Of a DNA stretch of 64,000 nt, positions 3,618 through 61,105 are shown one piece after another. This DNA comes from Oikopleura dioica (Eukaryota; Animalia; Chordata). Below the pieces are notes generated by a model. That model was not told the DNA's origin. It saw only the letters and a program-made list of their open reading frames with translations, and did not search any database. The position numbers and the translations under genes are program-made. The stretch spans positions 7,130,001 through 7,194,000 of the forward strand of contig OU015567.1 in the NCBI GenBank assembly GCA_907165135.1. Reading direction: 5' to 3'. Position 1 is the first letter of the stretch; each line of letters begins with the position of its first letter.

Positions 3618-6600
3618 TTATTGTTGTGAGCCAAAAACGTTAGCGATTTCGTCGTGCTCAACAATTGGCTCTTCATCATTATCCTCTCCGTTGACAGGAA
3701 TGTGATGAGGACGGACAAAAAGCTTTATCCTAGGCAATATGTATCGTTTTCCTGCAAAGACCAAGGCAATAATGAGGATTATGAAAATCAAGAAGGTAAA
3801 TAACATTCCGGCGCGACCAGTGGTTTCGTACGGCTCAAGGGTCCCGTCGTCTTCGGCGATATAAATAGAATGAATAATTAAGTGATTATCGTTGTGCGCT
3901 TTGATAAGGCCCTGTATCAGATCCTCGCGGAACTCGTCCTTGTCTCCCGTAAAGTCTTCCGATAGATGGGCGTAGATGTACATCAGTGTTAAGTTTCCCG
4001 AGAGTGAGTGGCTAACTGGCAAGATGTCGATGTCAGTTTCGAAATTGAAGTGGTATTTATTGACGAGCTCGTCGACCTTGTCATCCTCAAGCATTTTCGT
4101 CAGCAGCAACGTTTTGATGTATTCTTTGATTGCTTGGTACTCTTGATCGTGAGCGGGAGAAACTCTGAATGAAACACAGTCAATTGAATCCAAGGAAGGG
4201 AGGAACTTACATCGAGCTTTGAAAATGCACCTGAATCATCTGAAGATCAGGAGAAGTTTTCATTCGACACTGACTCGTCGTCGTCCCCAAAGTCGACCTT
4301 ACGCTTACTTGGACGTCTAATTGCAGATCCGCAGAGTAGCGATTAGGAAAAGTTACTAAATAATATTGAATCAGAGGAATACATGCATGACATACCATTA
4401 ATAAAAGGAGTGTTCTGCTCAGAAAAGCCTTCATTGTTTCTGAATCCATCTCCTGACCATGTGAAGGAAACAGGGCCACTAATCTGATCGAGTCCATGAA
4501 AATCCAACCAGTGACCATTTTCATCCGATACATGAACATTTAGCTCGTTGATAAATCCGACTTTTGTAAATCGAGGACAGTAGAGTAGCGCGTTCGAGAT
4601 TTTTTGCAAAACTAATGATTGAGCTTGCTTTTGGAAGATTAATTTCCTGATCACCTGTGAAAGATTCGGTGTTTTTGGATAACTCGTCGCTCACGTGGAT
4701 AGTGTATTTGCCAAAAGGGAGGTCTTTGTACACAAACTTGTCCGTCGTCTTATTAGCAATTACCTTCTGTTCGTCTTCGGAAAATAATGTCCACTGAAAC
4801 GGAGGAGTACCGCAGGAATCAAGCAGCTCTGCAGAAAATGCAAGTGGTCCCTCGAGGAAAACCTTCCCTCCAATATCTATTTTGGACTTTTTACAATCGT
4901 CGTTTCCTGAAACCGTTAGCATGAAATATCCATTCGTGTAATCTACCTGATGCCCACGAAAATTCCGTGCCGCATAGATTTCCAGGGGCTTTGATCGGCA
5001 GCAACGACGATTTACGAAGATAGCCGTTGTAGTCTTTCAAATAGCTGCAACGATGGTCCTCGACTACCTTGAGATTGTTTTGGCAGAAGTAATCATTCAT
5101 TGAACAAGATTTACAAGGCTTCTGCATTGATTTTTCTTTGGATGATTTCTCAAACGACTCAGAATTGTAGCAACTGTAATTGATTGACAAAATGCTCTAC
5201 AGACTGCGATATTGAGTCTTAAGACTAAAAGATAAGACTTAAGGGACCTGGGCGAGCAGCGCTGAGCCAAACTTCACGCGCTCGCCGTTCTTGTTAGAAA
5301 TAAGATTTTTGAAATTTCTTTTGTAAATTATATCTCCAAATCCTCAGCTTTCTGTTCCAATTCTTAGTTTTTCTCTATCATTCTTGGTTGATGAGCTAGC
5401 GAGAAAAGAGAAGCCCAACTTCAAAAGGCATCAAGTCTTGCAAACTTAATTTTTCTTCATAAAATTAGCACCATTGAAAAGCGCGTTAAATTCTGAACAG
5501 ATCCCACTCCATCAGCTTAACTAAATGGGTACTCATTGGCGTGTAAGGCCAGATAAACAAGATAACTTAGCGCCCGCCCAGCGGGAATCATGTCCAGGAA
5601 GCCCAAAATAGCTAAATCGGAGCGTCCAGCCGTGCCGCGACCAGCTGCCCGCGCTAAGTAGTTCTCTTTATCTGGCCTTACACGCCAATGAGTACCGATT
5701 TAGTTAAGCTGATGGAGTGGGATCTGTTCAGAATTGAACGCTCTTTTCAATGGTGCTAATTTTATGAAGAAAAAATTAAGTTTGCAAGACTTGATGCCTT
5801 TTGAAGTCGGGCTTCTCTTTTTTTCGCTAGCTCATCAACCAAGAATGATAGAGAAAAACTAAGAATTGGAACAGAAAGCTGAGGATTTGGAGATATAATT
5901 TACAAAAAGAAATTTCAAAAATCTTATTTCTATCAAGAACGGCGAGCGCGTGAAGTTTGGCTCAGCGCTGCTCGCCCAGGTCCCTTAAAACTAAAGTTTT
6001 TCAACCGTAACTTGACAAGGGTTTCTTTCTCCAGTATGAAATCTCCGCTCCAATCGTATTTTTATCATCGCAGTTTGAGTATACCCACGACTCGTAGTCG
6101 CTCTCCTTGCAGTACTCATACAAATGAGCAATGTTGATCGAAATCGTGACCCATTGATGATTACCGTTATGGGCAAATACGATAAATTCTTCAGCGCCTT
6201 CTCCTTTTGTCCAAATCGCATCTAACGAAGATTCGGAGATTTAGAGATAAACTCAAGAAAGAATCCTTACCAGAGACAATAGGCTCAGTCGACATTTGAA
6301 TCGTCTTCCAATTTTGTCCATCATCAACGGTATAATACAGCTCAATTGACTTCTCAGGAATCACGACTAAAATCGACCCATAATCGAGAAAAGCGTGAAG
6401 ACTTCGTGTATTCTCCAATTTTCCCGGAAAAGAAGGACTCTTCCATGTCTTCCCAGCATCGTTTGTTATAAACAAATTAAGCTTATCGCTCAGTTGCGGG
6501 CCCACAGAGCCCATAGCCAGGACAAATCCTGGCATGAGCTTTTTCGAAATGACTGTTGGAACATAAACTCCCGTGGATAGGTACGCATCTTCTAAGTGAA

Positions 6601-8035
6601 TGTTCAAAGTATCTCCCTCTGCTATTTCTTCAGTTGACAGAGGCTGGGAAAGTACTGACCAGCTTTTTCCTCCATTCCATGTGATCACCGATTGATAACG
6701 ATCATCATAGTAATGATTCGCCAAAAAGCACCCTCTCAACCCTTTCACTTGATGAATATCAGCGTTGAAAACATTTGGTTGGATCGAAACACTCATGCAA
6801 CCCGTCGCTACTCGATCAAAAAACTTCACGTCCGTCAATGACTCGCGGAACTGCACACCATTCTCGTCAGAAACGTACAAATTACAAATACCACTGGCGT
6901 GCTTGACAGCGAGAAGAATGAAGTTTTGGTCCGTGGAGATAATGTGAAAATCTTCATGAGAAACTTCAGCAGGAAAAGATGTGCGTTGGAAAGGCAGACG
7001 ATTTTGGGAGACATGGAGGAGAGAGACATAGTTCATCCGACTTTCAAAGAATAAGAAGCCATTCTCGCTTCTGAAAGATCCTTCCGCCATATCATTTTTC
7101 TTCGAATATTCTCGCAGCGCTTCATATTCTTCTCCAGCTGAAGAGCAATCTGGCACCAAGCACGAAACAACCTCGTAGTTTCGCAAATAGTTTTTGATCG
7201 AAAATCGCTCAAAATGAACAACTCGTTCCCAATTCTTCACCGATGCTTCTTCGCCAGTGATTGTTTCGTACTTTTCGTCGCCCCAGTAGACTTTTTGCGG
7301 ACTAACAGAGTCCGAAAGCTTATCCAGCGTCTCTCCGAAATCCCGAGATACCCACAGCGTCATTTTCGAAAAATCCTGCAATAGAAACCAATCAACTTGA
7401 CTTGGGTGAAAAGTGATGCTGCTCGCAGTAACTCCAGGAGGGAGAATTATCTCCTTCATCGTTTTCATTCCATCTTTAGAAACGAAAATAGCTCGTTCAT
7501 CCCTTTTCGTCTCCGGTGCTTCGAGAAAAACCAACCGGTCTCGATCGACATCGCTCCCTTGCATGAGACTTATGATCACATTTTCGCCAAATTTCGCGCT
7601 CTCGTCAGTCCAGGACTTTCCAGAATCAGTTGATGTCCAATACGAAAATTTCGTACTAACAGTTCCCTGCAACAAGATTATTCAAACAAGAAAACGCGGA
7701 AAAATTTACCTCGCAATTTCGAAAGAATAAATGAAAAGAATCAGAAGTGTCGCGAATAAAAGCCTGGTGCATGTCTTTTAGATGCGAGGGAAAGGTCTTT
7801 TGAGTGACATAATCGGGAATAGTGACAGTTTCGATACCCCTTCTACTTCTGATAACATTTTCAGCTGGGGAAAATGGCAATTTCTGAAGACAAAATTAGC
7901 CGAGTCTTCGATTGATAAATGTCTTACCTGAATAAGAGCACCAGAATCAGAATTTCCAGTCACAAAAAGAGCATTTTGGAAAGTCGTTTCGGCAAGAAGA
8001 AGCAACCAAGATATGTACAAAAACGGCGACGTCAT
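3618..8035 (-). CDS. VPS10P-domain sorting receptor (sortilin/SorCS-like), type I membrane protein, multi-exon
   Basis: Signal peptide at ATG 8035, furin-like RSRR site, BNR/Asp-box repeats (STDSGKSW, SRDFGET, TWNGGKSW, TNDAGKTW, TVDDGQNW), Cys-rich 10CC-like module (PCKSC..DYFC..GYLR..PGNLC), PKD-like beta domain, TM helix (MLFTFLIFIILIIALVFAG) and acidic tail ending at 3618. Confidence 0.85.
5243..5984. mobile_element. Non-autonomous foldback DNA transposon (~330-bp inverted arms, TTAA target duplication, GG...CC termini; Kolobok-like) inside an intron of the VPS10 gene
   Basis: TTAA at 5239-5242 and 5985-5988. Left arm GGGACCTGGGCGAGCAGCGCTGAGCC... is a near-perfect reverse complement of the right arm, around an ~80-bp spacer. 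Confidence 0.9.
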
Positions 8036-11704: not shown

Positions 11705-11865
11705 TTTCTATTACACAATCCATTCCTACTCCTTTCTCCTTGCGAATGTTTTATTTTCTCCTTCAAATTACATTTTTTCTATTTTATATAACTTACTACC
11801 AATTTTAATAAAATAAAAGATGATTTTTTATTTCTTTCCTTTCTTTCATTGTTTGCCGCGCTAGA

Positions 11866-16500: not shown

Positions 16501-17221
16501 ATGTGGGACATCGTCTTATCGTATACGAATGAACGAATCGACTTCAAAGTCGACCCAGAGTGGTCGCTAGAAACTCTATTTTCGAAAGTAGAGGACCTGC
16601 TTGATGTGCCAACGACGAATATGAAATTGATCGTCGCCGGAAAGGGGCTTCAGAATGTGGCGGATCAGAAAGTTGGAACTTCTGGCCGGGTTTCTAGAAG
16701 TAGTCTTTTGTGTTGTTGAGGGTAGGATTTGAGGAACCCAGTGAAGGATAAAAGAAGGAGGAAAACTCATGGTCTTGGGAAAAAAGTGTAGCGCCGCTGA
16801 GGATGCAATCATCAGTCAGCTCAGGCCGCTCAGAAAAGACTTCGACAACAAAGTGGCTAAATTGGACCAAACAGGTTATCCTGATGATTTGGCTTCCAGT
16901 AACTAATTCTATTTGTAGCCGGGTCTGTTGAAAACTATGAAAAGGGTTTCGTCCAGGAGAAGAAGCGTATCGACAAAGAAATCATCGCCATCAATGAGTT
17001 CTTCATGAAAACGCTAGAAAAACTCGATGGTGTGTCCATTGCAGCCGATTTGAAAGCAGCTCGGCAGTACCGAAAGACTATGGTCAAGGTAAGTCTCATA
17101 ATTCAAGATGAAGATACATTAAAGGCAAATCAAGGATATCCAGGCGCAAATGGACCGTGCTGATTCTCTGCGATCAAGACTATCCTTCAGTCCGATTGGC
17201 GAATTCGCCACAAAAGAGTAG
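16501..17221 (+). CDS. BAG1: BAG family co-chaperone (ubiquitin-like + BAG domain), BAG1-like
   Basis: UBL (VEDLLDVPTTNMKLIVAGK...KLMVLGKK) then BAG helix bundle (EFFMKTLEKLDGV...RQYRKTMVKDIQAQMDRAD). Stop at 17219-17221. Confidence 0.8.
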
Positions 17222-17332
17222 ACTTTTGACAATTTAGTTCACTTTTCCCTTGTTTTTCCTTTGCGCGTGACATGTTGAATAAATCTTTAACTTTAAAGTT
17301 TGATCCTCTTTCTTGACCGCCCCTGCGCTAGA

Positions 17333-18895
17333 ATGCCAAAAGAACGTAAGAAGAAAGGAGCACGAAAGAACAACGATCCTCTGATCAAAAAGCCAAAGCC
17401 ACTCGGGCAAGAGCCAGTTGAACACATGGGAGATGGAGTTTTGATCAAAGATGTTGATCCATCGAAAAGTATGGATGCTGATGCTTATTTATTTCTTACT
17501 TTTTTAAGTCGGACAATCAATCGGGCAGTCAGGACCTAATTTTGTCGACCCAAAAATCACTCGTGGAATTCTTGAGGCAGCTCGGGAACAGCAGAAGGAA
17601 GAAAACCCGATTGGACTTGACGATGAAGACGAATTTCCAGCTCTGGGGGCTATTACAGCGAAAAATCCATTGGAAGATGATGACGACGAAGAATATGAGG
17701 ATATCGATGAAGAGGGCGAAGATGTGGAAGAAGTTGTGATCGACGGAGATGATGAAGAAGCCCTCGCGATGTTCTCTAAGGGAGGAGAGGTAGGATCAGT
17801 TTAAGAGGCAGTTTGTCTAAGATGATTTTCAGCGGCAAAATTTGGCCGATTTGATCATGGCCAAAATTGAAGCAAAAAAGCAGGATGTTCAAGAAATTGT
17901 TGGCGAAGACGAGGTTGGCTCTAACTTGCCGGAAGAACTCGTTATTCACTACCAACAAATCGGCAATGCCTTGGCTAATTACAGAAGTGGAAAGATGCCA
18001 AAGGTAAAATACCTTCAATTTGCAACGTCAAATAAAATGAATGAAAGTTTCATGAATCCTTAAGTCTTTCAAACTCATCCCTCGCCTGACAAACTGGGAA
18101 GACATCCTTGACGTCATGGCTCCTGAAAAGTGGTCGGCCGCCGCGATGTACCAAGCCACACGAATGTTTGCATCGAACATGTCCGAGGGTCTTGTCCAGC
18201 GATTTTACAATGTGTACCTCTTGCCTCGAATCCGAGACGATATTGAATTTTACAAAAAGCTCAACTTCCATTTGATGAGCGCGCTGAAAAAGGCAATTTA
18301 CAAGCCCGCTGCGTTCTTCAAGGGAATTCTTCTTCCATTGGTAAAAAAAATCATTGGAATCAAGGAAGACTAACTTCACTTTTCTAGGCCATGGCAGCAG
18401 ATACTTGCACCCTTCGAGAAGCAACAATCATCTGCAGTTGCCTGAGAGAACATTCTATTCCAGTCATGCCAGCGGCCGCCGCCATGCTCAAAATTGCTGA
18501 AATGGAGTACAACGGAGTCAACTCGCTATTTTTACGAACGCTCATTGAAAAGAAATATGCCCTGGTAAACCGATCCTAAATATGGGATTTTGACAGTTGA
18601 AATATTTTAGCCTTTCCGAGTTATGGACGCTTTGGTTTTCCACTTTCTCCGATTCAAGAACGAGAAGCGCGTCCTCCCCGTCCTCTGGCATCAGTGTTTC
18701 CTATCGTTCGTGTCAATATACGCAGCGGATATTTCGGCGGAACAGAAAGAAGCGCTCATGGAACTAACGAAGTTCCAGAACCACCCGAAGATTGTGAATG
18801 AAATCAGACACCAAATTCAGAGGACTGAACCGAGAGATATTGAAATGGAACAGCCTCCAGAGCATATTTTGGAGGAAATGATGATGGCTAACTGA
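17333..18895 (+). CDS. BYSL: Bystin / Enp1 (40S biogenesis), multi-exon
   Basis: [54 protein letters not shown] and [10 protein letters not shown]. Confidence 0.93.
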
Positions 18896-19006
18896 ACGAA
18901 ATAAAACAGACACAATTGTGAACTTATTGTTGTTGTTTTCTTGCTGGTTATCTTTGTGTTTAATTGAATCTTTATCAAAAGAGGAGTAAAAAGATTCAAA
19001 TTTTAG

Positions 19007-22000
19007 ATGAAGCGAAGTCGAGACTATGGCGCGGGTGTGGAAGTAGATCCATCCGAAAAGCGCGGATGGAAGATCATCCACCAGTCTGTTGTCGTCACGC
19101 AAATCAGTCTCCGAATGCGCTCGCTCATGGCGTTTGTAGACTTGCGCATTCGCCCGCTCGATCGAAACTTGAAATGTAACTTTCTTCCTTATCAATTTTC
19201 AAAACTTAAAATTCACTAGCAATCAGATTGAACGCCCGTCAGTTGCGAATTTACTGGGTTCGTTGCGACGATATCGTCTGCAAGTTCGGCTACGTGGATC
19301 CCAGCTCAAAACTCGCCCGAACCGACTTTCCTCAAAAGAACCACACGTACATTCAGCATTGCTACGAGTCCGCGATCGCCGAATCCGATCCAGATCGAAA
19401 CCACGGTGAGCTGAAGATTGACCTACCACCTGAGATACTCGAGCGGATTCGAAACAATCCCGAATCTCCTCCAACGCTTTCTATTACAGTTGAATACACG
19501 CTTGAAAAGCCCCGTGGAGGTCTTCAATTTATCCAGGGTCCGAACGCCCATTGCTACAGCTATGGCGAAAGTAGACAGTGGTTTCCCTGCGTCGATACGA
19601 ATACTGAACTTTGCACTTGGACCCTCGACTTTACCGTTGATGCGAATTTAACAGCAGTTTCTTGTGGAGAACTGGTGGAGACTGTTTTGAGCGAAGACAG
19701 TAAAACGAAAACCTACCGCTACAAATTACTCGTCCCCACTAGCGCTCCGAACATAGGACTGGCCATTGGAAGCTTTGATATTCACGTGGATCGGGCAATG
19801 CCTGAAATGACGCATTTCTCCATCGCTGGACTGGTCGATTCCCTCGTGTTTTCAACCAATACAACTTACCAAGTCATTGAGTACTTTGAGGACCTTCTCT
19901 CCGCCAGATTCCCATACGCTCTCTACAAGCAGGTTTTTGTCGAGCGATTGCCAGACAAATTCAAGTCCTATAGTTCGATGACGCTGTATGATACTAATTT
20001 ACTTTATAATGAGCGAGTCTTGGACCAAGGAAAAGAGGATAATTTTTTATAATTTTTATTTACAATTTGAATGAAGGGTTTACAAGACCTCTTGGGAGAG
20101 GTTTAGGAGAATCAACATGTACAAAAGTAGAGCGGTCGATCGTAGCAAAAAGCGATGAATCGAAATGATGGTCGAAAGAGGGGTTGATAACTCCCTTCTT
20201 CGTCAAGCAAGGAGATGGGTAGTGGTAGAAAGAAGGAAGTTCCTTCTTAGTCGCTGATTCTTCGTTCGTTTTGCAAATGCAAAGAGACTCGAGGCAGAAA
20301 AGGAATCCAACGGTGGAGCAGTAGAAGCAAGATTCGGTGGTAGAGGTGTTCATGGATTTGATTGTTGTTTTTTGATTGATGAGTTCTATCGCTAAAATGA
20401 TCGCTTATATACCCGGAAGTAAGGCGCTATAATGAGCGATCGCTATCAGCGCGCAGCAGATTTCGCGGAAAGCAGCAGGCATCAATCGGCGAAATGAACA
20501 TTCGTGACATGACTGGAACAGCTGTGCGCTTTCATTTTTTGTTCATCCCGGCTGGATATCTTTGAGTCATTACTGTTCCTTACCCCTTTGAAGTTTTGTC
20601 GGAGACAAGTTTTTATCCTCATGAAAAGTCATTCCAACGCGGAAAATCATCGCTAGAGCAATTGCAGCTCAATTCTTTGGTTGCTTCATGGTCGCTGGAA
20701 AGGATGGAAACTGGTTGCCAGCGGCGATTGGTGGTTATTTGAACTCACTTTGGCTGAGGAAGACATTTGGAAACTCTGAATATCGGTATTTCATTTACGA
20801 TGAGACGCGGAAAGTCTGCGCGTATGAAGAGAAGGAAACTCCAATTGTTCTGGCCAACAGTTTCTCAAATCAAACAGTTCGGCACAAGAAAATGGTAGCA
20901 AAGAAAGGCCACCTAGTCCTCCGAATCCTTGAAAATCGTCTCACAACTTCACTTCTTCTCCAAGCCATCAACAAACTTCTTGCTATTTCTCGCGACTCAT
21001 ACCTCAGAACAGAAGGAAAGCTTCTTGCAAACAAATCTGGGAAGTTTGAGAAATCGCCGCAAATCATTTCTTCAGTCAGTTTTTTGAAGTTTGTCGCTTC
21101 TGTAACCGAAAAAGATGTGAAAGACTTGTTGGATCTGTGGGTCCGCCGTGGAGGAGTGGCGAATATTGTAGCGTCATTTTCTTTTCAGCGAAATAAGAAT
21201 ACGATAGAAATAGAATTGAAGCAGGATCGATCTGGGTCGGTCAGATACGTTGGTCCAATGACAGTGAGGGTTCAAGAACTCGATGGTACTTTTAACCACA
21301 CGATTCAAGTTGAAGACAAGACAAACAAGATCTCGATCAGTTGTCATTCCAGAGCGAGGAGAAATAAGCGAAAGAAGATACCCCTGCTGAACGGAGAAGA
21401 AGTTGACATTGATCTTTCCCAGAGCGACCAAGATTCACCAGTTCTTTGGATTCGACTCGATCCAGACTGTAATTTATTGAGAACAATCGAGCTCAGACAA
21501 CCAGACTACTGCTTACAGTACTTGGTAAAATACGAGCGAGAAATCATTGGCCAATTAGAAGGAATCGAACATCTCAAAGACTATCCAACAGACAATACAG
21601 TCAAGTCACTGAAAGAAGCCGTGGAAAGCTTAGATTTCTTCTGGAGAGTGCGAGTTCGTGCAGCAGAAATGATGGCTCGTGTGGCAGATCAAATGCCAGA
21701 TCCTGTTCCTGTAAAAGACGCTCTATTATCGGTGTTCAAAAGCTACTTCTGTTTGTCAGATACAGTTTCGAAAGAACGTCTGGTGCGGAGAAACGACTTT
21801 TCGAATTTTCAACAGTATTTCGTCCAGTGTGCAATTCCATTGGCCATGTCGAGAATACGACTCTCATCGGGGATGACTCCGGCTGGCGTTTTTACGTTCA
21901 TTGCGAATTTGATAAAGGTAAATTTTCTTTTAATTTTTCAATTCACATCCTTCGTTTCAGCACAATGACAACTCAAAAAACGCGTACCTTGATTGTCAAT

Positions 22001-40664: not shown

Positions 40665-42707
40665 TCAGAGCTCGTCATGTTGTCCCTCGTGCAGCTTCTT
40701 CTTGGCCTTTTCTTTTGTCCAATCGAAAAGGGTGTCGAAAACTAGAGGGCCTTCGTATTTGACCATGGTTTCCAAGCCTCTGAAGAGCCAAAACTCTCCA
40801 GCTTTGACTTCTTTGCCCCGGAGAACAGAGGTCGAAGAAGAGGCGATGATGTAGTTCTTCTTGATGTTGAATTCGGTGATTCTTGGGTAGCCTCGTTTCT
40901 TCTTTTTGTAAGTTTCAAGCGGGAAAGCTTCCGCAATTTGTTTTAGGAGTTCCATTTCTCGTTCATTTCCGCCGTGGTGGAACAGGACAAGGTGAGGTTT
41001 TTGCTGGGCGATGTTTTGCTCGAAGACGGCAGTTGTCTAAAATAATGTTCAAAGTGAGATAGAACGATTTCTTTACCAAATAGAGCGGTTCCATTTCGTA
41101 GAAGTTCTCCGGCGCTCCTTCGGCAAGTTGGAACTTCTCATTCCCAGCAAGTGCATTTTCGAACACTTCAAAAAGTCGATCTGGCTGCCACTCCTTCTTC
41201 TTCATGACTCGTCTTCCCCAGCGATTTCCCGTTGCCGTGTGGGAAATTCTGAGTGCGGATAATTATGGTTTATGCCAAAAATAAACGTGCGAAAGTGGCT
41301 CACCTGTAGGTAGGAAGCTCATCAGGCACGACATCGAAGAAGCCAACGAGTCGATAATTATCCGGGTTGTCGGCATCTGCCACCATGAAAAGCGTATCCT
41401 TCCCATGACCCGCTAACAAAAAACATGGTTACGTTGAGCTCAGCATACTCACTTCCACCTCTCATAAAATGCCTTGACAATAAATACACTTACTTTCAAT
41501 GGAAGAAAAACTCAACAAAAATGACTTAGAAAATTACCTTGTTCAACTTTTGCGGCGAATTCGATGAAGTTGTCCAAGATCTTAGCATATTTCGTTTCTT
41601 CTTCCTCATTTGTCGGATCAGGAAGGAGTAGGAAGATGTGATGAGCTTGATCTTTGTTAAAAATAACCATCGTGTGCTCCTTAATTTTCATTTTGAACAA
41701 ACCATCATGCGTTTTCATCAAACCTCTGTATAATCCTGCACAAGTGGCTTGCCAAAATTTTCAAGGAAAGAGCTCAGCGTCTCCTTGGTCATTTCTCCTT
41801 CCATTTCAACGATTCTTCCTGGCATGGACTGCTTGAAAATGTATGTTCCATGTCTCTCAATCTAAAAACTGAGATTCGATGGCAAGACAGATTTTCCTAC
41901 CCCAAAGACTTTCGCTACATCGGCATTAAAAGTAGCCGCCATTGTGACCAAATCGAAATCATCGCTTGCATATTCTAGCGTGGAGATATTCGCATCGCCT
42001 TCTGGGTAATATCCGAGGCAGAGCACTTGGGTGTCTTCATTGTACTTCTCTTTGAGTGCCTCAGCTGCATCAAGCGTTTCAACGTGACTGGGGTGAGATT
42101 TATTGCCAATTGAATTAATGGAAGGGACTCTCACCGAAAACTGTACAAAATTCGACGGGCCATAAATTTCACCAGTTTGGGAATGTGACGACGACCCTGG
42201 TATCGCGAAGCTCGTCCGTTTTTGTAAAAATTAATCCAAGGATAGCCTGAAATCAACAATGACAACTCCTCTTCTTTCTCTCTTACCCTCGATGTTGTAC
42301 ATCTCTTTGATTCTCTCTGTATCTGCGCCCATGTTGATCTGGACGAGTTCGATGTTCTGAGCCCATTCGAGATCCTCGAGAGCTTGGGGAAGCTCGTTGA
42401 AAGTTTCGGAAAACTCCATGCAAGGGATGCAAGCGGGATGAAAAAAATATGCAAGGACGTATTCATTCTCATCAATCATTTTTTGCAGCTCGCCAATGTC
42501 TTCCACATATTCGATGTATTCCTGAAAAAACCATACCGAGAATCGTTTTTTGTTGTAAAATACCTCTTGTTGTTCTTCCTTGATTTCAGTTGAATCTGTG
42601 GCCTCAATCTCAACATTTTCACTTTCGACCACGACATTTTCCTCGACGACCGTTTCTTCAGCAAAGGAAACGGCAAAAAGGGCAAAGGCCCAAAGTAATA
42701 ACCTCAT
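40665..42707 (-). CDS. ER protein disulfide isomerase-like protein (CIPC active site, HDEL), multi-exon
   Basis: Signal peptide, acidic stretch, thioredoxin domain FFHPACIPC...GYPWINFYKNG...YQGRR, further Trx-like exons, C-terminal HDEL*. Confidence 0.82.
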
Positions 42708-43003
42708 TTTCTTTTATTATTTGCGAGGAATTTCAAATTTTGGCGGCGATATTAGGAAGCACACATCTGTCCACTTTCCCAACTTTACGTGTAAGCCACG
42801 TTAGTATTTGTTTCTTTCGTCAATTTTAAGAAAGTTTCGGAATCGAACTTGAGTTTGATGTCGAGGATTTATTTGTTTATTTTCAAAAGGATTCGGAGCA
42901 GAGAAATAATTTTTAAAAATGTGATCAAATTTTCAGCTAATTTCTAACGCGGTCAGGGATAAGGAAAGGGTGTTAAAGTCTCAGTTTCAGCGCTGATCAG
43001 CTG

Positions 43004-45553
43004 CTAGTCGTTCCATTGTTCGGTGCCGAAGACGCTCGCGATGTTGTTATGCTCACAAGCATCCTCTTCATCGTTGTCGTTTTCGTTTGCTGGAGTGTAG
43101 TGTGGACAATCAAGCGCGTGTTGCAAATCATCATGTTCAATAAGTGGTTGATCTTCGTTGTCTTCTTCTTTTACGGGTTTGTATTGATGACGATTTTTAA
43201 TCTTCGGCAATATAACGCTTTTTATGACAAAGACAAGAGCAGATAGTAGCACCAAAGAAATGGAGGAGGAGTAGAATATATGATGAGTGATGATTGCAAG
43301 GAAGCGTTTGAACCATGTCTTTTTTAAAGAGTTTTTCTTCAAAGTAGTTGGATCATAATCTGCACAGGTCGGAAAATCTTTCGGCAAATAAGAATAGGGC
43401 TTGTTCTCTTCCTTGTCTTCAACATTCAATGCAACGGCCATTCCTTGGGCATTGTGGAAAAGTTGATGACAGTGCATAGGCCAGATTCCAGGATTAGTCG
43501 CCCGGAAGCGGACAATCGCGTAGCCCATTGCCGGGACTAGAATCGTATTCTTCGCGACGGTGTTCTTACTTCGCAATCTTCGAGTCTTCAAAATGTCTTC
43601 TCTGTATTCTACTCTTGGACAGCGGCTTCCACCAATACATGTCAACGCATCATCAAGTCCAATAATTTTTCTATGTTCATCAAGTCTCGGAAATCCAAGT
43701 TCCTGGACAAAAAACTCGTAGCCGTGCAAATGAAGCGCGTGATAAGTCCACTCGTACGGGGAGTTTTCGTTTGTGATTTCATGAGCAGCGGATATTCGTA
43801 TCTCAACAAGCTCGTCTTTTTGGACTGTGAAAATTTGCGTACAAGTTCTGTTCCCCTCATCTCCTAGAATTTCTTCAGTGCAAGGCGTTATATACTCGTC
43901 CTTGATTCCATCGAAAAAGGGTCGGTATGGATAGGCGAATTTGATCCCGTTGATTGACGATCCTCGAGCAAGATTCAAATTCAATTCAATGACTTGATCT
44001 GGCTCTTCATGAATCTCTGCTGGATCGTACTGATAAGCATCTGCTTCGATGCTTTCATCTCGAAGAAAATCCATTATTCCAACGCAATTGAAGCCACGGT
44101 AGTTGGCCAGCGGACAGTTGAGATAAGTGAAACTAGGATGATCCAAATTTCCGTCATAGTCCATAAATTCTGTAACATCCCTGCCTTCGTGAGGTCTTAG
44201 AGGAGGTGGCATGTCTTTCCAGGGCTCAAGAGCGACGAGATTCCGGATGCGTTCTCCGCGAAACGGGGCTGAAGATCGCTTAACAGAGACTCTTACAAAA
44301 GGTCGAGGGCTAAGCTGGTAGTCCGGGTCAACCACATGTCCGTATCCTTCGACCATGATTTCAGCAATGAACTCAATCTCGTCAAGTCCGTTTAATTCGC
44401 TTTCAATATTCCACGTCTCACCAACTCCGAAGATCAGTCCATGTCCAGCTGTTGACTTGATTCTTCTACCATCAGTTCCAGTCGCATAAATAGGCAAACT
44501 ATCAGCTCGTCGAACTAGAATTGGAACTTCGAAGCCGGCGTGGATTGCTTTCAACTCGACAGTTTCTGTTTCGTAAGGAAGGACAAACTGCTCGCCGATA
44601 GAAAACTCTGACGAATCATTTTTATGTCGGAATTGCCCATGGCCGTTGACCAAAATTGAATCGACGCAGTAGCTGCTCACTTTTGCCCCGTTGAGAAAAC
44701 CCTTCTCCGGAGTGGTGCATGTTCGCGCTCCAGTTCCAGTAAAGCGATCTCCACCAGAGAAGCCATAACGGTAGGGATCCGCAGCAGCGAGAAAGTCAGA
44801 ATCATCTCGATACCAGTCGGTCATAACAAATGGAATTTTGTTCGCGTGGTCTTTTTGTTCTTCTTCTTCAAGGACGATGAATGCTCCATGAAGTCCATCT
44901 GCCCGCTGCAGTCCTTTGTGCGAGTGATACCAGTGCGTTCCAGTGTTTTCAGCCTCGATGACGTATGTAAACTCATTGAAACTGTTTACTGGGCACTGAG
45001 AGAACATCGCTCCTCCATCCATCCAGTAGTTGTTCATCATATGTTGCCCATGCCAGTGGAGGGTAAATGCCTGATCATGAAGTGCGCTTTTTACATGGAT
45101 AATGACCTTCGCCCCCTTATTTACGATAACACTCGGACCGGGAAAATGACCGTTTGTTGTAATAACTCGGCGTTCTTCCTGGCCGTCGGTGAAGAAAAGG
45201 TTCTCTAGCTCGTTCAGGGGGTTGAGGGTGTTACCTTTTTGATCGACAAGAAATGGAGTATTGGCGGTAAGCCCGATCTGGACAATGTCTAGGTTATGGC
45301 GTGTGTGGTTCCAAGTCACCGAGAAATCACGAAGAGAACCCTTTGCTACATTTGTTCGCTGCCCGTAATCTCGCGTTCGCCAGGTGTTAGTTAGTCGATA
45401 CTCAATGTTCCAGAAGTACTCGCAGACATCAGCAGTACAAGCATCATTGCAGGGCTCATCGTAATGGCAGATAACTTGGCGAGTTTTGGTTTCTTGCTCC
45501 TCATTTGGTTTCGAAAAGGTTCGATGCAAAAATATCAGAAAAAGAAAGTTCAT
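43004..45553 (-). CDS. Laccase-like multicopper oxidase A, intronless, with C-terminal TM helix and cytoplasmic tail
   Basis: All four Cu-binding motifs: HWHG, WYHSH, HALHLHG and HCHQLFHNAQGM. Signal peptide and Cys-rich N-terminus. Confidence 0.93.
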   Translation of the reverse strand: MNFLFLIFLHRTFSKPNEEQETKTRQVICHYDEPCNDACTADVCEYFWNIEYRLTNTWRTRDYGQRTNVAKGSLRDFSVTWNHTRHNLDIVQIGLTANTPFLVDQKGNTLNPLNELENLFFTDGQEERRVITTNGHFPGPSVIVNKGAKVIIHVKSALHDQAFTLHWHGQHMMNNYWMDGGAMFSQCPVNSFNEFTYVIEAENTGTHWYHSHKGLQRADGLHGAFIVLEEEEQKDHANKIPFVMTDWYRDDSDFLAAADPYRYGFSGGDRFTGTGARTCTTPEKGFLNGAKVSSYCVDSILVNGHGQFRHKNDSSEFSIGEQFVLPYETETVELKAIHAGFEVPILVRRADSLPIYATGTDGRRIKSTAGHGLIFGVGETWNIESELNGLDEIEFIAEIMVEGYGHVVDPDYQLSPRPFVRVSVKRSSAPFRGERIRNLVALEPWKDMPPPLRPHEGRDVTEFMDYDGNLDHPSFTYLNCPLANYRGFNCVGIMDFLRDESIEADAYQYDPAEIHEEPDQVIELNLNLARGSSINGIKFAYPYRPFFDGIKDEYITPCTEEILGDEGNRTCTQIFTVQKDELVEIRISAAHEITNENSPYEWTYHALHLHGYEFFVQELGFPRLDEHRKIIGLDDALTCIGGSRCPRVEYREDILKTRRLRSKNTVAKNTILVPAMGYAIVRFRATNPGIWPMHCHQLFHNAQGMAVALNVEDKEENKPYSYLPKDFPTCADYDPTTLKKNSLKKTWFKRFLAIITHHIFYSSSISLVLLSALVFVIKSVILPKIKNRHQYKPVKEEDNEDQPLIEHDDLQHALDCPHYTPANENDNDEEDACEHNNIASVFGTEQWND

Positions 45554-45593: not shown

Positions 45594-46265
45594 CTGTCAA
45601 TGGCGTCTTTGGGCGGAAGTTTGTCTGAGGAAGGGCGAAAGCGTGATTCCGCTTACCTATTATATTTTGAGATCTATTCTGCGCTGCTAACCGGCAACTA
45701 ATTATAATGAAAAAAAAGTTTACCATTTCGCACATTTGCGGTTTTTTTGTACCGCTCTCATTATTGAACCAATGATCTTTTATTCTTCAGCCCTCTATCT
45801 TGCCGGCGTCAAACAGAAAAGCTGATTACCTATTGTACTGTCAGACGTAATGGCGGGAAAAGAAGTTCAATGTTCCGAGTTTTTCGATCAAATGTGTGAT
45901 TATATTTGCTATATCTACAAAAAATATGTACATAAAATACTGTAAGCTGAACTAGAACAGAAGCTGAGCTGTAAGAATCACAAGGAGTATATTCAGTACA
46001 GTCGTTTTAGAAGAAGAGTCCTCCATCTTGGTTGGATCGTAATTTCCACATGTCGGGAAGTCAGTCGGGAGATACGAATACGGTTTGTTTTCCTCCTTGT
46101 CTTCAACATTCAACGCCACGGCCATGCCCTGGTAATTGTGAAAGAGTTGGTGGCAGTGCATCGGCCACACTCCTGGATTTGTCGCCTTGAATCGAACAAT
46201 CGCGTAGCCCATCGCGGGAACTAGAAGCGTATTCTTCGCGATCGTATTGTTACTTTGCATTCTTA

Positions 46266-47543
46266 ACATAGGTCATCCCCTTGTTACCAGGATAAACGTT
46301 GGCGAAAATCTGAATTTAGCAGGATAAACCCCAGGCAAACTTGCCCCCATGTTAGCAGGATAAACTTTGGCAAAAGGGCTCATTGTTAGCAGGGTAAACT
46401 TTGGCACTCAATTAACAGGGTTGCGTGAATCATCAGCGCTCGCCCAGGGCGTGACGTAACAGTTAGCCCGAGGAGGACTCAACCTGCTGGAAGAAAATGC
46501 CAATGAAAAATATCTTCATAAAATCTGCTTGAAAATTTCAATATATATTTATAAATTCAGTATTTAATACAAGTTAACGATTTTATCATTATTAATTTTA
46601 ATTTTGATATTTATTCATATTTTTAAATTATTTATTTTTAGGGCTTAGGAGGGTAGGCACCAGAGTTGCAAATTTGGCTTTATTTTCGCTGAGCTGAGTG
46701 AGCTGAGTTGAGCTATTTTTACTGTATTTTAGTAGTAAAATTGTGTTGAAATCATTGAGCTGAGCTGAATTATTATCGACGATAATTTATCGTCTGAGCT
46801 GAGGAGATCAGTTCACTTTTGAAAATCACTGAGCAGTCTCAGCTCACTTAACTCAGCAAATTTGAAACTCTGGTAGGCACATTATACAGTATTACTAATA
46901 CTGTATTAGAAAGCTCAGAAGCTGAGCTATTTTGACTATTGATAACGGGGTGATCTCGTACCTGGCCCTTTTCGGACTCTAACCATCTTTCAAGAAGAAA
47001 AATCTCCAAAGTTGATCCCGAGTGATCCCAGGTAACCCCAACTTGACCTCAGGTCAGCAATGATGCAGATATTATATCCAATATTAGATATATAAGATAT
47101 TAGTCCCTATATTCTATAATGATATGGGCTATACTTCACCGAAGTCGCTTGATCTAATGAATGGCCTCGGAATCCTGTAAACAGGAACAGAGACAGGAAC
47201 AGGGATTTTATTTTTTGGCCCATTTTAATTTAAAAAAAATTATATATTAAAATTAAAATTAATAACATAAAATTGTTCACTTGTATTTCAAGCAGATTTG
47301 CTTCATTCGCATTTTCTTCCAGCAGGTTGAGTCCTCCTCGGGCTAACAGTTACGTCACGCCCTGGGCGAGCGCTGATGATTCACGCAACCCTGTTAATTG
47401 AGTGCCAAAGTTTACCCTGCTAACAATGAGCCCTTTTGCCAAAGTTTATCCTGCTAACATGGGGGCAAGTTTGCCTGGGGTTTATCCTGCTAAATTCAGA
47501 TTTTCGCCAACGTTTATCCTGGTAACAAGGGGATGACCTATGT
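46266..47543. mobile_element. 1278-bp non-autonomous DNA transposon, ~235-bp near-perfect TIRs, TA target duplication (Tc1/mariner-like)
   Basis: ACATAGGTCATCCCCTTG... / ...CAAGGGGATGACCTATGT. TA at 46264-46265 and 47544-47545. Four subterminal (AG)CAGG(A/G)TAAAC repeats per arm. No internal ORF. Confidence 0.92.
46661..46872. mobile_element. Nested 212-bp hAT-type MITE
   Basis: 8-bp TSD GTAGGCAC (46653-46660, 46873-46880), TIR CAGAGTT(G/T)CAAATTT, internal CTGAG repeats. Confidence 0.9.
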
Positions 47544-49536
47544 TAGATTGTCCAAGATGCTTTCCGTGTATTGAACTCTCGGGCAGGAACTTCCGCCTTC
47601 GCAGGTCATTGCTCCATGAAGTCCAACAATCTTCCCATGATCATCGAGTCTGGGAAATCCAACGTCTTGGACAAAAAACTCGTAGCCATGCAAATGGAGA
47701 GCGTGATAGGTCCATTCATATGGAGAAAGTGGATTTGTTATTTCATGGGCAGCAGATATTCTGAGCTCAATGATCTGGTCTTTCTGGACTGTTATCATTT
47801 GAGTGCAGGTTTTGTTTCCATCTTCACCCAGAACTTCATCGGTACAAGGAGTTATGTTCTCCTCGTTGATTCCATCGAAAAACGGGCGGCTTGGATAAGC
47901 AAATTTGATTCCGTTGACAGATGATCCTCGAGCAAGATTGAAGTTCAATTCAATAATTTGATCAGGTTCTTGCTCAATTTCCGACGGGTTGTATTGATAA
48001 GAGTCAGCGTCGACGCTCTGATCTCGCTGGAAATCCATAATACCAATGCACTTGAAGCCGCGGTAGTTGACTACTGGGCAGTTGATGTAAGTAAAGTGTC
48101 GGTGGAGAGGGTCGTTGATGTCTACTCCTTCATGAGGTCTTCGAGGAGCAATCAAGTGCTGTCTTGGCTGAAGAGGAAGAAGTTTTCTGGTTCGTTCTCC
48201 CCGAAATTGCGTAGAAGATCGACGAACAGGAACTTTCACGTAGGGTCGATGGCTGTGATGATAGTCCGCATGAACGACATTTCCGATTCCTTCGAGCATG
48301 ATTTCAGCAATGAACTCAATATCATCAAGTCCATTGAATTCGCTTTCAATATTCCAAGTTTCGCCAACGCCGAAAATAAGTCCGTGACCGGCTGTGGACT
48401 TGATTCTCCTGCCATCAGTACCGGTTGCGTAAATCGGCATATTATCAGCTCGTCTGACCAAAATGGGAAATTCAAACCCGGCATGAATGGCCTTCAACTC
48501 TACTGTTTCTGTATCGTATGGTAAGATATACTCCTCGCCAATAGAAAATGCCATTGATCCGTTGTGTTGTCGAAATTGTCCATGGCCGTTTACAGTGATG
48601 GAATCGACGCAGTAGCTGCTCAGTTTAGCCCCATTGAGGAAGCCCTTTTCTGGCGTTGTGCATGTTCGCGCTCCTGTTCCAGTAAATCGATCTCCTCCAG
48701 AAAATCCGAAGCGATAAGGGTCTGCAGCGGCGAGAAAATCAGAATCGACTCGGTACGAATCAGTCATGACAAAAGGAATCTTATTACAGTGATCTTCTTG
48801 TTCTTCTTTTTCCAAAACGATGAATGCTCCATGAAGTCCATCAGCTCTTTGAAGTCCCTTGTGCGAGTGGTACCAGTGTGTTCCACTGTTATCAGCGTTG
48901 ATTACGTAAGTGAAGTCATTGAAACTGCTCACGGGGCATTGAGAAAACATCGCTCCTCCGTCGTTCCAGTAGTTGTCTTCCATGTGGAGCCCGTGCCAGT
49001 GGAGAGTAAAAGATTGATCGTGGAGGGCGCTTTTGACGTGGATGATGACTTTTGCTCCCTTGTTGACCATGATGCTGGGGCCAGGAAAGTGACCATTGAT
49101 GGAAATGACTCGGCGTTGATCTTGTCCGTCGGTGAAGAAGAGGTTTTCAAGCTCGTCCAGAGGTTCAAGTTTGTCGCCGTTTTCGTTGACGAGAAACGGT
49201 GTATTTGCTGCAAGGCCTTCTTGTATGATTTCTACGTTTTTGCTTGTCTCGTTCCAGGCGACAGAGAAATCGCGAAGAGATCCGCTTCGAACATTCGATC
49301 GCTGGCCATAGTCTCGCGTTCGCCAGGTGTTTGTTAGTCGATACTCGATGTTCCAGAAGTACTCGCAGACATCAGCAGTGCAAGCATCATTGCATGGCTC
49401 ATCGTAGTTGCAGATAATTTGCTGCGATTCTGCTTTTTCCTTCTCCGTTGGCTTGGAAAAGGTTTGATGTAAAAGTAAAACAAAAAGAAATTTCATTTTT
49501 GATTTTTTTTGATAACCGTGGGTTACGAGGACTACC

Positions 49537-57000: not shown

Positions 57001-60000
57001 ATTATACACCGCATCATCCATAGAATCTCCAATAACGCCACAATCATTCAAAATCTCGTTCGCAGATCGCAAGCTTTCAACGAGAGAAAGTCGCTCGTTC
57101 AAAGTCGCATTGAAAGAATGTCCATTCGCATTATTGACTTTGTATAAAACTGTCATTTTCGGACGGACTGTAAGACCCGATTCTTCAGCTTTCAATGCGG
57201 GTCAATAGTAAGTCTCAAGAAGGAAAAATCGTTATCAATAAAATTTTGACCAGAGCCTATGGAACTCGATTGATAAGCGCGAAGAACGATTGGTAAAATA
57301 TCCTTCACTGCTGAGTCGTCATCCCCAACCGTCATCATGATTGTAGAATCAGAAGGAATGATGCTCATTGTCGCCATTTTATTGTCTTTATTCTCGCTAA
57401 ATGCTCTTCCTGCAAACTCAGGAGCTCTGAATTACAATTTAATTCAACTCAAGAGGGCTTAGTAAGTTACTTACCTAATTCCTTTTGTATCGAGCACTAG
57501 AATGTAGTCAAATAACGGAGAAAACTTGGATTTGACCAGTTGCATATTGATTCCCCTAGAACACATTCCATCTCCGCAGCTAAACTGCGTCCCGAACATC
57601 GTATTCAAAAGAGTTGATTTGCCAGCAGATTGGACCCCAATAACTGACTGTACGAAGACCCGGACGTCTCCAATTTTCTCAATGACAGAATGAAAGACTG
57701 CATCGAGCCACTTCTCGTTCAAATGCCCTGTATCTCCGTCTTGTAATTCTAGAGGGAAACCATCCAAAAGATGTTGCGCAGCGATGGAAGGGAGGAATTT
57801 GATCTTGGTTCGTCGCGGATTTCCGACATAGACGTGGCTCATCTCCCGCCAGATTTGAGTCAGAGAAACAGATTGTTTTGTGTACTCAAGTTTAGCCTTG
57901 AAGAAATCTTTTCGTGCTTCTTCCCCTCCTTTTTGCTGCATATTGTTCGCCGCAGTCAAATAATTCTGATACGATTCGGCGGTGTATTGCCCCACGAGTC
58001 GTTCAAAAACATGCGAGAACGTCTTGAATCCGAGAATTCGTAGCTCGTCGTCCTCATTCTGAAGCACGCGTAGAAAAACGTCGATAATTCCACAAATTCG
58101 GCTCGTTTTAATCTGCTGCTGGTACGTCTCTCTAGCGCGTTTTAGCTCTTCCGTCTCTTCGGAAAGCGACAGATTCTTTTCGTCCAAAAGGTTGCAGTAG
58201 TTTTGGAAGAGTTCCTGGAGCCCTAGTTCATTTCTCAGAACATTTTTCGAAGCCAAACAGGACTTGACCGCGGCATCGAGTGCTTCGACCCCAGATGATG
58301 CGTAAAAATGCTCGACATTTTCCGCCCTCAGTTTTTGCAGCGAAACTCGTTCGTCAAACCACTTCCACTTTGATAGATGCTCGTTCAGCTCGTCCGCGAT
58401 TTCATCAAGCTCTTCTGACTCATTTTGCAAAGGAACAGTGCCGTTCTTACTGTGCATTGTGTAACTATCCCCGTCAGATACAATGACATCCGCAAATTTC
58501 TCGACAAAATCCATGAGCTTTTCTGATTTTCCTGAAACATTCAGGACTATCCAAGGATCCGGTTGGGACTTGTTTTCAACATCGATGAATCCGATGCCGA
58601 TTTCGACAAATGTTTCTTTGAAAACTCTTAATTTTGTGACATTCGATGTCCCTGATGTCACCGTGTGATGAAGAGCGAGTTCGATCAATTTTGGGTTGCG
58701 TTCTTTTTTGTCCTTGTCGGAAATAAACGCGACTCTTGGCAAAGAAACATCGTTCGCCAAATTGATCTTGCTTCCATCTCCAACGAATATTTCAAACAAA
58801 TCGAGGGCTTTTGAAAAGTTGTCAAAACCAGCTCCTTCCAGGGACTTCAAGATAATGGGCACAGATCCACGCTGCTCTAGAATCTTTTGAAAAAGAAAAT
58901 TATTTCGGGCAAGGCCATTTCCGCGAATGATCGAAACCAGGTTTTTGAAATTCTGACTTCGCATCTTGCCATCTGTGAATTTTTGCCGATGAACGATGTC
59001 GTGAATGACTGCTTCGGGCGTGTTCGACCCGAGTGCTTCGTGGTCAACGTCTTGGAACTCGATTCGATGGGTGAATCGTGGGACGAGGGTTGGATCGACC
59101 CAGCGAAAGACTGGTCGTGGCAAAATTATGTCCAGCATCGAGTCATTTTGCGACTGCGAGCTCGAACTCCGTTTGGAAGAAGAGTCCACTGTCATGCAAG
59201 ATTTCATCGATTTCAAATCGTCCAGCGTGTCACAACTCATTCGCCGTTCGTTCAAGCTTTCCTTGATGTTTGCTAGTTCAGCTTTTCTCTCATTCTTTGC
59301 CAGGTGCACCATCTTTACCATGTTCCCATTCTTGTCCATTGCTGCTTTCTGGACGAGTTTTACAGTATACGAGTTTCTGCGCTCGTGTTTGGCCAAGTCT
59401 TCGGGTGGCAGTTTTTTGACAGAATCGGACCAGCTCTTGTCGTGGATATCAAAGATGTTGGTGACTTTTACACTTTCTAATTTTGCTTGCTTCTTTTTCG
59501 ACTTCTTCGCCTTTCGTTTTTCTTCTTTTAGTTGTTTCTCGACTTCTTTTTGTTTTTCAACAAACTCTTCGTATTCCTTCTTCAACTTTTCGTCATCTTC
59601 CAGTGTCGATGATTCGGGTTTTTCGGCTGTTTCTTCTTTTGGAAGAGACTTCTCCTTGTTTTTGTCTTTTTTCTTCTTCCTTGATTTTTTCTCGGGCGCT
59701 TCAGAAATTGACGATTCGGCTTGAGAGATTTCAGATTTTTCCTCAGGTATTTGCTGAATGTTTACTCCTGGAGTTCCTTTTCTTGCCAGCGGCTTTCGCG
59801 ATTTTGTTGGTACTTTTTGATGGTTAGTCAAGTTCTTTTTTAGCTCTTCTTGGTGCACTTCGGAAACTTCGGAGACAGACACTTCATCGGCTTCAGTTTT
59901 GACCTCAATTTGCGGCGCAGAAACTGGCTCTTCTTTTGGCACTTCTTCTTGAAACTCGGGCTCTTCTTCGATGACCTTAGGAATATTGACAGATTCTTCC

Positions 60001-61105
60001 ACTTGATAAGAGACTGGCATGCTCTCTGCATCGTCGGATGTATTTTGATTGCCATCGCTCAGCGGATCTTCCACGATATTGTCCAATTTAGCATCTAATT
60101 TATTCGCTTCATTAATTTTTGCTCTATTTGCCAGCTTATTTTTCACCACATCTTTATATTTCTCCTTCCTGGGAAGAAACTCGGAGTCTGAATCTGTCGA
60201 AACATTTGAAGTTGTTCTTGGTACTTTTGGAGGAAATCGAACTACGGGAGGTGTTAGGCCACTTTCTACTGATTTTTCGGCGTCTGGAGCACTTTGCTCT
60301 TGAATTGATTGGATTTGCTTTGGCTTTGGGCGGACAGAAAGGCTGAATAGTGTTCTATATGAATTTTGCTTATTATGATATTGAAATGATGATGAAATGA
60401 ATTTGTTAGAACGCTCCTTAAACTCCCAACGCGACGTTTATATTGCCTCGCTGATTTTCCAGACTTGCTTCCTGAAGAATCATCCTTTTTACATTCAATT
60501 TGATCTTTCTGCGGTTCTTGGCCTTCTTTCGATAAATCTTCTATGTCAGGTTTTTCTTCTGGCTCTGTGGTCGAGATTGTTTCAGGCTTCACATTTCCTT
60601 CTATCTTTTCTGCTGGTTTTTCCAGAGCAGAGTCTGACGGAATTTCTTCAGGTGAGCTTGATGATTGAGACTCACAAGATGATTTGCTCACCGGTACCCA
60701 GGATTTTTCACGGCTGGGATGAGAGCTCGAGGTATTTTGGAACGAGTTTCCAGTGAGTCTTTTAACCATTCGGGCGAGCTCAGATTCATGCGATTCTTTC
60801 CCTCCATTGTTACCGGTAATCGGAGCGATGGTTTTAATATTCAATGTTTTGGGCTTTGAGATATCCTTCTTGTCAGCCTCTTCTTTCGGTGGTTCTTTTG
60901 TGACTTGTTCTTCTTTAGCAGAATTTTCAGAAGGCTTGGAATCTGTTGTTACAGATCCAACCGTGTCTCCATCGAAATCTTCTCCATTTGTATCTTGCGA
61001 GCTAAGACTCAAACCTGAGCTTACATCTGAGAAGTCCGATACTTCCTCCGATATTTTCTCCCTCACTAGGTTTTCGCTTTTTTCGTTTTTCGCCTCTACA
61101 GACAT
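54016..61105 (-). CDS. GVIN1: Very large inducible GTPase-like protein (VLIG/GVIN1/URGCP family) with long acidic and Lys-rich N-terminus, multi-exon
   Basis: LPRVAFIS, FPLELQDGD, G1 VIGVQSAGKSTLLNTMFG, CSRGINMQL, G3 LVLDTKGIRAPE, and C-terminal CPVCHTIC..H...H..KHQPLGLAG. Confidence 0.82.

Follow-up and report, generated by a model that had tools for sequence, protein, structure and literature searches.

The stretch of DNA analysed here (the window) is 64 kilobases (kb) of chr2 of Oikopleura dioica OKI2018_I69. It holds the multicopper oxidase (MCO) gene laccase A and the gene for a Vps10-domain receptor, which lie on the same strand (minus) about 39 kb apart and whose products end in similar transmembrane (TM) and cytoplasmic segments. 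Laccase A (43004..45553, minus strand) is one open reading frame (ORF) of 849 amino acids (aa) that comprises a signal-peptide-like N-terminus, a multicopper oxidase body, a TM and a cytoplasmic tail, and the ORF listing of the window showed the coding sequence to be uninterrupted throughout. The name 'laccase' was taken over from a preliminary description of this DNA and implies no substrate specificity (phenol, iron or ascorbate). Pfam detected Cu-oxidase_3 (PF07732, 3e-33) and Cu-oxidase_2 (PF07731, 9e-22) in laccase A; the middle domain, PF00394, was undetected there by Pfam, though found in more distant homologs. All four copper-ligand motifs (HxH, HxH, HxxHxH and HCHxxxHxxxxM) were present, as HWH at 166, HSH at 210, HALHLH at 605 (HLH at 608) and HCHQLFHNAQGM at 694. 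By its domains and copper motifs, the predicted product is a three-domain, laccase-like MCO.

The receptor ectodomain has a different fold, a Vps10 beta-propeller. Its propeller exon (6191..7675, minus strand) matched Sortilin-Vps10 (PF15902) at 2e-63 over profile positions 3-441 of 446, and the nearest solved relatives of the Vps10 domain were SorCS2 (4.6e-33), SorLA (about 6e-27) and, more distantly, sortilin (1e-13). Between propeller and TM there were only weak Ig/PKD-like matches (Y_Y_Y, 2.8e-4; K319L-like PKD, 0.033); the membrane-proximal part gave no match to solved SorCS2, and the membrane-proximal exon matched solved structures at chance level. The last exon (3618..4164, minus strand) encodes 118 codons of membrane-proximal ectodomain, a TM of one 20-aa hydrophobic helix (3750-3809), the juxtamembrane box KRYILPRIK (3723-3749) and an acidic unit (3621-3722), and closes with a stop codon (3618-3620); the cytoplasmic tail is 43 aa long. 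The splice acceptor of this exon is kept in metagenome orthologs, and the upstream exons have the same strand and order as in the orthologous contig L008. Exon order and synteny indicate that tail and propeller belong to one gene, the predicted product of which has type I topology, one TM and a short cytoplasmic tail.

The TM and tail of laccase A (43004-43255, minus strand) matched the TM and tail of the receptor (3618-3790, minus strand). When the laccase tail was compared with all six frames of the window (tblastn, composition-based statistics), the receptor tail was the only match apart from the laccase tail itself (E-value 4.2e-9, 36% identity over 75 aa). The Smith-Waterman score of the two tails was 108. 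Shuffling the whole sequence gave a mean of 22.8 (standard deviation 4.3), and shuffling with TM and cytoplasmic segments kept apart gave a mean of 26.8 (standard deviation 5.3); none of 5000 shuffles reached the observed score under either scheme (z 15-20 over both), and the cytoplasmic part by itself matched the receptor with a shuffle z of 14.6. The laccase A TM helix, SSSISLVLLSALVFVI (43223..43270, minus strand), contains the 19-aa windows with the highest hydrophobicity in the protein and aligns with receptor TMs of four lineages. Directly after it, the juxtamembrane box KSVILPKIK (43196..43222, minus strand) is identical at 6 of 9 residues to the receptor box, which did not vary among these four lineages.

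Differences between the two tails were unevenly distributed, with a proportion of synonymous differences (pS) of 0.68-0.88, which is saturated, and a proportion of non-synonymous differences (pN) of 0.19-0.31. Because synonymous sites are saturated while pN is low, the similarity is old and held at the protein level. As judged from these alignments, the TM and tail of laccase A are homologous to those of the receptor, and the homologous segment is about 60-85 residues long. The preliminary description had proposed a TM end and tail common to two proteins with unrelated ectodomains, with many third-position differences and an old similarity kept at the protein level. Each of these points was borne out: the tail translations and quoted matching blocks read as given there, Pfam assigned Cu-oxidase and Sortilin-Vps10 domains to the respective ectodomains, and the match was significant both with composition-based statistics and against shuffles.

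The laccase tail is longer than that of the receptor and, on alignment, consists of the TM, K..ILP.IK and two tandem copies (R1 and R2) of the ~30-aa receptor acidic unit, which the receptor carries once. R1 (43109..43192, minus strand; laccase residues 788-815) scored 69 against a shuffle mean of 21.7 (z 10.3, 0 of 20000 shuffles). R2 (43007..43108, minus strand; residues 816-849) ends in IASVFGTEQWND ahead of the stop codon (43004-43006) and is identical to the receptor unit at 17 of 30 positions, with a score of 99 (z 18.3) that none of 20000 shuffles reached. The receptor unit was placed on R1 by DNA alignment and on R2 by protein alignment. The 26-aa 'gap' of the first alignment is thus no unrelated insert but another copy of the acidic unit, one that has diverged further. 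R1 retains the core P[LI][IV]EHD[DE][LI]; R2 retains the PH..P.N..DNDEE and IA.VFG..Q blocks and has lost the hydrophobic pair (EEDAC).

The integrity of the laccase 3' end was examined in independent DNA. Over 42850-43650, which spans the junction between oxidase and tail, 51-91% of the 31-mers sampled are present in four DNA runs of the species. X29, a DNA run labelled as another organism, yielded contigs spanning 42775-43174, 43146-43427 and 43427-43655, and the second of these (283 nucleotides, nt) joins oxidase body, TM and tail without a gap. Misassembly of the laccase 3' end, raised in the preliminary description as an outcome that would undo the shared tail, was ruled out by the contigs that bridge the junction. 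Nor is the laccase tail a mis-joined copy of the receptor, because its DNA differs from that of the receptor. A pattern scan found two AATAAA signals (42868..42881, minus strand) 123 and 131 nt past the laccase A stop codon and none between the oxidase body and that stop; one ATTAAA lies at 43201, within the juxtamembrane codons.

Constraint on the receptor tail was assessed in four lineages, namely OKI and, from marine metagenomes, P0002/L001-3, P0028/L004-7 (including a Tara Oceans sample) and the syntenic L008. The non-synonymous rate (dN) of the cytoplasmic tail was 0-0.088 across them at a synonymous rate (dS) at or near saturation, compared with a dN of 0.067-0.23 in the membrane-proximal ectodomain part of the last exon and 0.07-0.35 in the TM helix; no other part of the exon was as constrained as the cytoplasmic tail. 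In its 43 codons, OKI and L001 differed by 12 synonymous and no non-synonymous changes, and TM dN was 0.25. This dN/dS comparison, one of the checks suggested at the outset, supports constraint on the receptor tail. Within the receptor TM (3750-3809), ALVFAG is altered to ALAVLG in L001-L003, the lineage nearest to OKI, and the other two lineages have ALIF; the 'ALVF' match quoted originally is therefore not conserved in every receptor lineage.

For laccase A, the comparison was with X29. All 7 of the differences listed within 43004-43255 fall at third codon positions (6 synonymous, 1 D-to-E), which by our arithmetic has a probability of (1/3)^7, about 5e-4, if codon positions were used equally. 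In the contig 42775-43174, all 24 gapped letters fall in the 3' untranslated region (UTR; 42905-42998), and the substitutions listed number 12 in 229 nt of 3'UTR and 4 in 171 nt of coding tail. These counts cover the differences listed: up to 1 more lies in 42775-43174 and up to 8 more in 43146-43427, which tempers the argument, and 224 differences lie in the compared stretch beyond those listed. Taken together, the substitution patterns point to purifying selection on both tails.

The direction of transfer was assessed from the paralogs of laccase A. Laccase B is its tandem paralog (dS 1.3, dN 0.14, pS 0.62), with a 5' coding block (47538..49496, minus strand) of 652 aa that is 76% identical to laccase A and a 3' coding block (45952..46272, minus strand) that matched laccase A residues 654-761 at 68% by tblastn and has a short hydrophobic C-terminus and no tail. 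A third paralog, g4438 (P0005), is also on chr2, outside the window; the source label 'ferroxidase' on P0005 is an automatic annotation. Laccase A is colinear with both paralogs past the last copper motif up to their stop codons and then continues. Laccase B and g4438 end at one aligned position with an SSS(K/G) run and a hydrophobic stretch of 15-17 aa (mean Kyte-Doolittle 2.4-2.5), and by inspection these ends look like putative glycosylphosphatidylinositol (GPI)-attachment signals. The colinear segment of laccase A, WFKRFLAIITHHIFY (43271..43315, minus strand), has a mean hydropathy of 0.65 and is probably the relic of an ancestral hydrophobic, GPI-signal-like segment. At the paralogs' stop, laccase B reads TTC TAG and laccase A reads TTC TAC and on into the TM helix.

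The 3' flank of laccase B holds no trace of the tail, and other MCO homologs have unrelated GPI-like or TM ends. Because the tailless paralogs stop at an aligned position, the laccase B flank is traceless and the ends of other MCOs are unrelated, parsimony favours a gain of the tail in laccase A. The near invariance of the receptor tail in four diverged lineages also bears on direction, as do the lack of a tail in both oxidase paralogs and the count of acidic units, one in the receptor against two in laccase A. Within its last 35 residues, immediately ahead of the GPI-like signal, P0005 reads HPKNIAIDEEPIRQNSSSG, with a DEEPI 5-mer and a P.N spacing in common with the receptor unit; this segment would be extracellular, and the likeness is probably chance in an acidic context.

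The manner of transfer was not that of classical exon shuffling, and the first label 'shuffled' fails if taken in that sense. There is no intron at the laccase A junction and the receptor last exon starts 118 codons before the TM, so that the segment is intron-bounded in neither gene. The gene structures instead indicate that the TM and tail were acquired by 3'-end capture or fusion, possibly through local duplication of the receptor 3' end followed by loss of a stop codon. As in other cases of gene fusion or 3'-end capture, one gene has apparently gained the C-terminal module of another and its paralogs keep the ancestral ending; here, however, the piece is a TM helix with an unstructured-looking tail rather than a folded or intron-bounded domain.

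A candidate sorting motif was found in R1. EDQPLI (43139-43156, minus strand; residues 800-805) lies 23 residues past the TM and fits the acidic dileucine consensus [DE]XXXL[LI] in a putative cytosolic segment away from the membrane. In tyrosinase, the corresponding motif is EKQPLL, in which the -2 Gln and -1 Pro matter for adaptor protein (AP) binding (PMC3418312); both residues occur in EDQPLI. The acidic cluster of the SorLA tail binds AP-1, AP-2 and PACS1 (PMC8858569). We infer that the laccase A tail may be a cytosolic sorting or interaction module, most likely an adaptor signal of the acidic-cluster/dileucine type.

These observations can be arranged in a model. The ancestral oxidase would have had the type of C-terminus seen in laccase B and g4438, short, hydrophobic and GPI-signal-like. 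A TM helix and 72-aa cytoplasmic tail would have been copied from the same-strand receptor at a distance of 39 kb, or from a receptor closely related to it, and the laccase A frame would have read through where the paralogs stop and into the captured sequence. Decay of the old hydrophobic signal could have followed, and the ~30-aa acidic unit could later have been duplicated in tandem. The resulting laccase A would be a type I protein with its oxidase domain lumenal or extracellular and its 72-aa tail cytosolic. Clathrin adaptor complexes might read this tail as an acidic-cluster/dileucine-type signal (EDQPLI in laccase A, DEEPIV in the receptor), and the oxidase, once held at the surface by a lipid anchor, would now follow the endosomal/trans-Golgi network (TGN) itinerary of the receptor.

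On balance, and with modest confidence, we favour the reading that laccase A is a membrane-anchored MCO whose tail was captured from a SorCS-like receptor or a close relative and acts in cytosolic sorting. A more specific version is tentative and, in our judgement, somewhat doubtful: that TM and tail form a portable lineage-specific trafficking cassette, the copying of which re-routed a formerly GPI-anchored oxidase into the receptor's endosomal/TGN (or secretory-granule) itinerary, with tuning by duplication of the unit and sharpening of one copy to E..PLI. The 'sortilin-type TGN/endosome/granule route' of the preliminary description is an extrapolation, because the Vps10 domain of the receptor is nearest SorCS2 and SorLA, not sortilin.

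Several observations weigh against the reading we favour, and the first concern the motif. The case for a trafficking function of the laccase A tail is one of motif resemblance only. The receptor counterpart of EDQPLI, DEEPIV, is off consensus, with I-V in place of L-[LI], and the second laccase copy (EEDAC) does not fit the dileucine consensus either. Because DEEPIV is non-canonical and the motif is lost in R2, the selected function may sit elsewhere in the unit, for example in EH[DN].[IL] or VFG. The receptor motif, invariant in four lineages yet off consensus, is the main doubt, and other blocks with another partner may carry the function. Selection could then be acting on a cytosolic module that is not an adaptor signal and that docks a common partner, such as a scaffold, a regulator or a factor of polarity or the cytoskeleton, or that holds the two proteins together in a complex or a membrane domain. 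The best-conserved positions over all units would suit such a module, since they are the acidic run, EH[DN].[IL] and VFG, not the dileucine pair. So would KRYIL, the first five residues past the receptor TM, which is also invariant; residues directly beside the membrane are too near it for typical adaptor signals. An acidic cluster with a hydrophobic pair is nevertheless classical in the tails of Vps10 receptors (PMC8858569) and tyrosinase (PMC3418312), and the laccase copy has a perfect [DE]XXXL[LI], leaving a non-adaptor module unlikely in our view.

Timing is a further difficulty for capture. The tail-versus-receptor pS, taken over 6-17 synonymous sites, is no lower than the laccase A-versus-B pS. 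Because it is not lower and the sites are few, the view that capture followed the A/B duplication is based on parsimony rather than dating. The same values would suit a TM and tail ancestral to the oxidase family and lost twice, in laccase B and g4438, by premature stops, and some animal MCOs, for example sea urchin P0017 and P0018, do have a TM and short tail. We consider such a history highly improbable: laccase B and g4438 share their aligned stop position and have intact hydrophobic ends, whereas the segment of laccase A has decayed, the flank of laccase B lacks any remnant of a tail, and the tails of other MCOs are unrelated in sequence.

Transcript data are the third point. Laccase A depth was zero in two bulk oligo-dT runs and one single-cell run of unspecified lineage and stage, and no indexed RNA run holds the laccase A stretch. 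Given the unspecified lineage of the runs, zero depth is absence of evidence, not evidence of absence. Three single-cell reads at 42584-42951 may derive either from the laccase A 3'UTR or from the 5' end of the gene that follows; their assignment is ambiguous because that gene starts only ~300 nt past the laccase A stop. The next gene (42231-42707, minus strand) has a signal-peptide-like MRLLLWAFALFAVSFA and a very acidic N-terminus. The missing RNA evidence would also be expected if the shared tail were an artefact, whether of chance or composition, of misassembly at the 3' end, or of an open frame that lies in the 3'UTR and is not translated. A chance or composition match was ruled out, with none of 5000-20000 shuffles at the observed scores; the tail DNA is unlike that of the receptor, X29 contigs bridge the junction, and the substitutions listed are confined to third codon positions and the indels to the UTR. 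An artefact is largely refuted already, and we give it almost no weight.

Further carriers of the TM and tail were sought in protein libraries, Joint Genome Institute (JGI) metagenome contigs and the window. A profile of both tails searched against 1.84 billion representatives returned only the receptor fragment P0002 and a spurious K/E-rich protein of 7764 aa. A word search of the laccase A tail region against 5.8 billion proteins found only itself, and a three-sequence tail alignment used as query found only the receptor fragments P0002, P0027 and P0028. A degenerate-pattern scan of the JGI contigs produced 450 pattern matches; the only one confirmed was the receptor ortholog L008. No third carrier was found in these libraries, contigs or the window; divergent carriers would be expected near the score threshold in databases this large. 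The coverage of these searches is the last of the points that count against capture from the receptor: they took in those libraries and the window, not the whole O. dioica genome, and even the two proteins of the window itself were missing from the matches in the representative library.

With the translated search limited to the window, a third gene might have been donor to both tails, or more O. dioica membrane proteins might carry the module, and the saturation of synonymous sites between the two tails, which makes the copy an old one, would accord with either. Profile, word and pattern searches alike gave receptor orthologs only, however, and the window holds no other copy. We regard either as quite unlikely.

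Laccase A and the receptor each resemble known systems in part. Tyrosinase and TYRP1 are sorted to melanosomes by AP-1/AP-3. Like them, laccase A would be a copper oxidase of type I topology, with its catalytic domain in the lumen, one TM and a short tail with E..PL[LI] (EDQPLI in laccase A, EKQPLL in tyrosinase; PMC3418312). They differ in that tyrosinase is a type-3 copper enzyme and laccase A has a three-domain MCO fold, their tails are non-homologous, that of laccase A was apparently copied from an unrelated receptor, and laccase A is known here from sequence alone. The O. dioica receptor resembles SorLA, SorCS1-3 and sortilin in its propeller (nearest SorCS2/SorLA), single TM and short acidic tail, the acidic block of which may resemble the SorLA acidic cluster, but the vertebrate motifs FANSHY, DDxxM and C-terminal VIA are absent from its tail, which gave no match to solved chains. 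Membrane-anchored MCOs (yeast Fet3p, hephaestin, insect MCO1-type) likewise carry an MCO ectodomain on a C-terminal anchor, and the insect homologs P0011-P0015 share with laccase B and g4438 a short hydrophobic C-terminal stretch; the anchors and tails of these MCOs are unrelated in sequence, and none has been reported to share the tail of a sorting receptor.

Membrane-anchored MCOs, copper enzymes with sorting tails and Vps10 sorting tails are each well known. On a homologous tail common to a Vps10 receptor and an MCO, the literature searched (Oikopleura laccase/MCO; MCO tails with sorting motifs) gave no description and nothing relevant, in keeping with the initial impression of novelty. Sorting signals of cytoplasmic tails are usually seen as short motifs of convergent origin. 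A sorting role for the tail would make it a documented case of a trafficking address moved between genes. Laccase A would then represent a clean, lineage-restricted natural tail swap, for which we infer a role in sorting, and laccase B and g4438, the paralogous oxidases that keep the old GPI-like ending, would serve as built-in controls. Laccase A and the receptor should co-localise, and laccase A should move to the surface when EDQPLI is mutated; for laccase B and g4438, the expectation is a place at the cell surface and release by phosphatidylinositol-specific phospholipase C (PI-PLC). The comparison also brings out a tail motif conserved in the Vps10 receptor of appendicularians. The scope is narrow, being one fast-evolving tunicate lineage with evidence from sequence.

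Within the laccase B coding sequence, window positions 46265-47545 are occupied by an element of 1281 nt, which splits the gene in this assembly. Its terminal inverted repeats (ACATAGGTCATCCCC and the reverse complement) are perfect over ~38 nt and adjoin TA. An X29 contig joins 46264 to 47546 with one extra base, giving a single 754-aa laccase B ORF colinear with laccase A. X29 depth over the element reached about 10,000, so that the element must be multi-copy; either a transposon inserted recently and disrupted laccase B, or the element is a transposon-derived intron. Bulk RNA reads (X4, X5) matched ~40 nt at 47162-47203 at 90-95%, with long loose ends on both sides, and look like transcripts of other copies of the element rather than of laccase B.

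Elsewhere in the window, the N-terminal half of a long ORF at 57471-60149 (minus strand) is rich in Lys and Glu; the ORF also encodes a URGCP-like GTPase domain (4e-38) that continues beyond the exon end.

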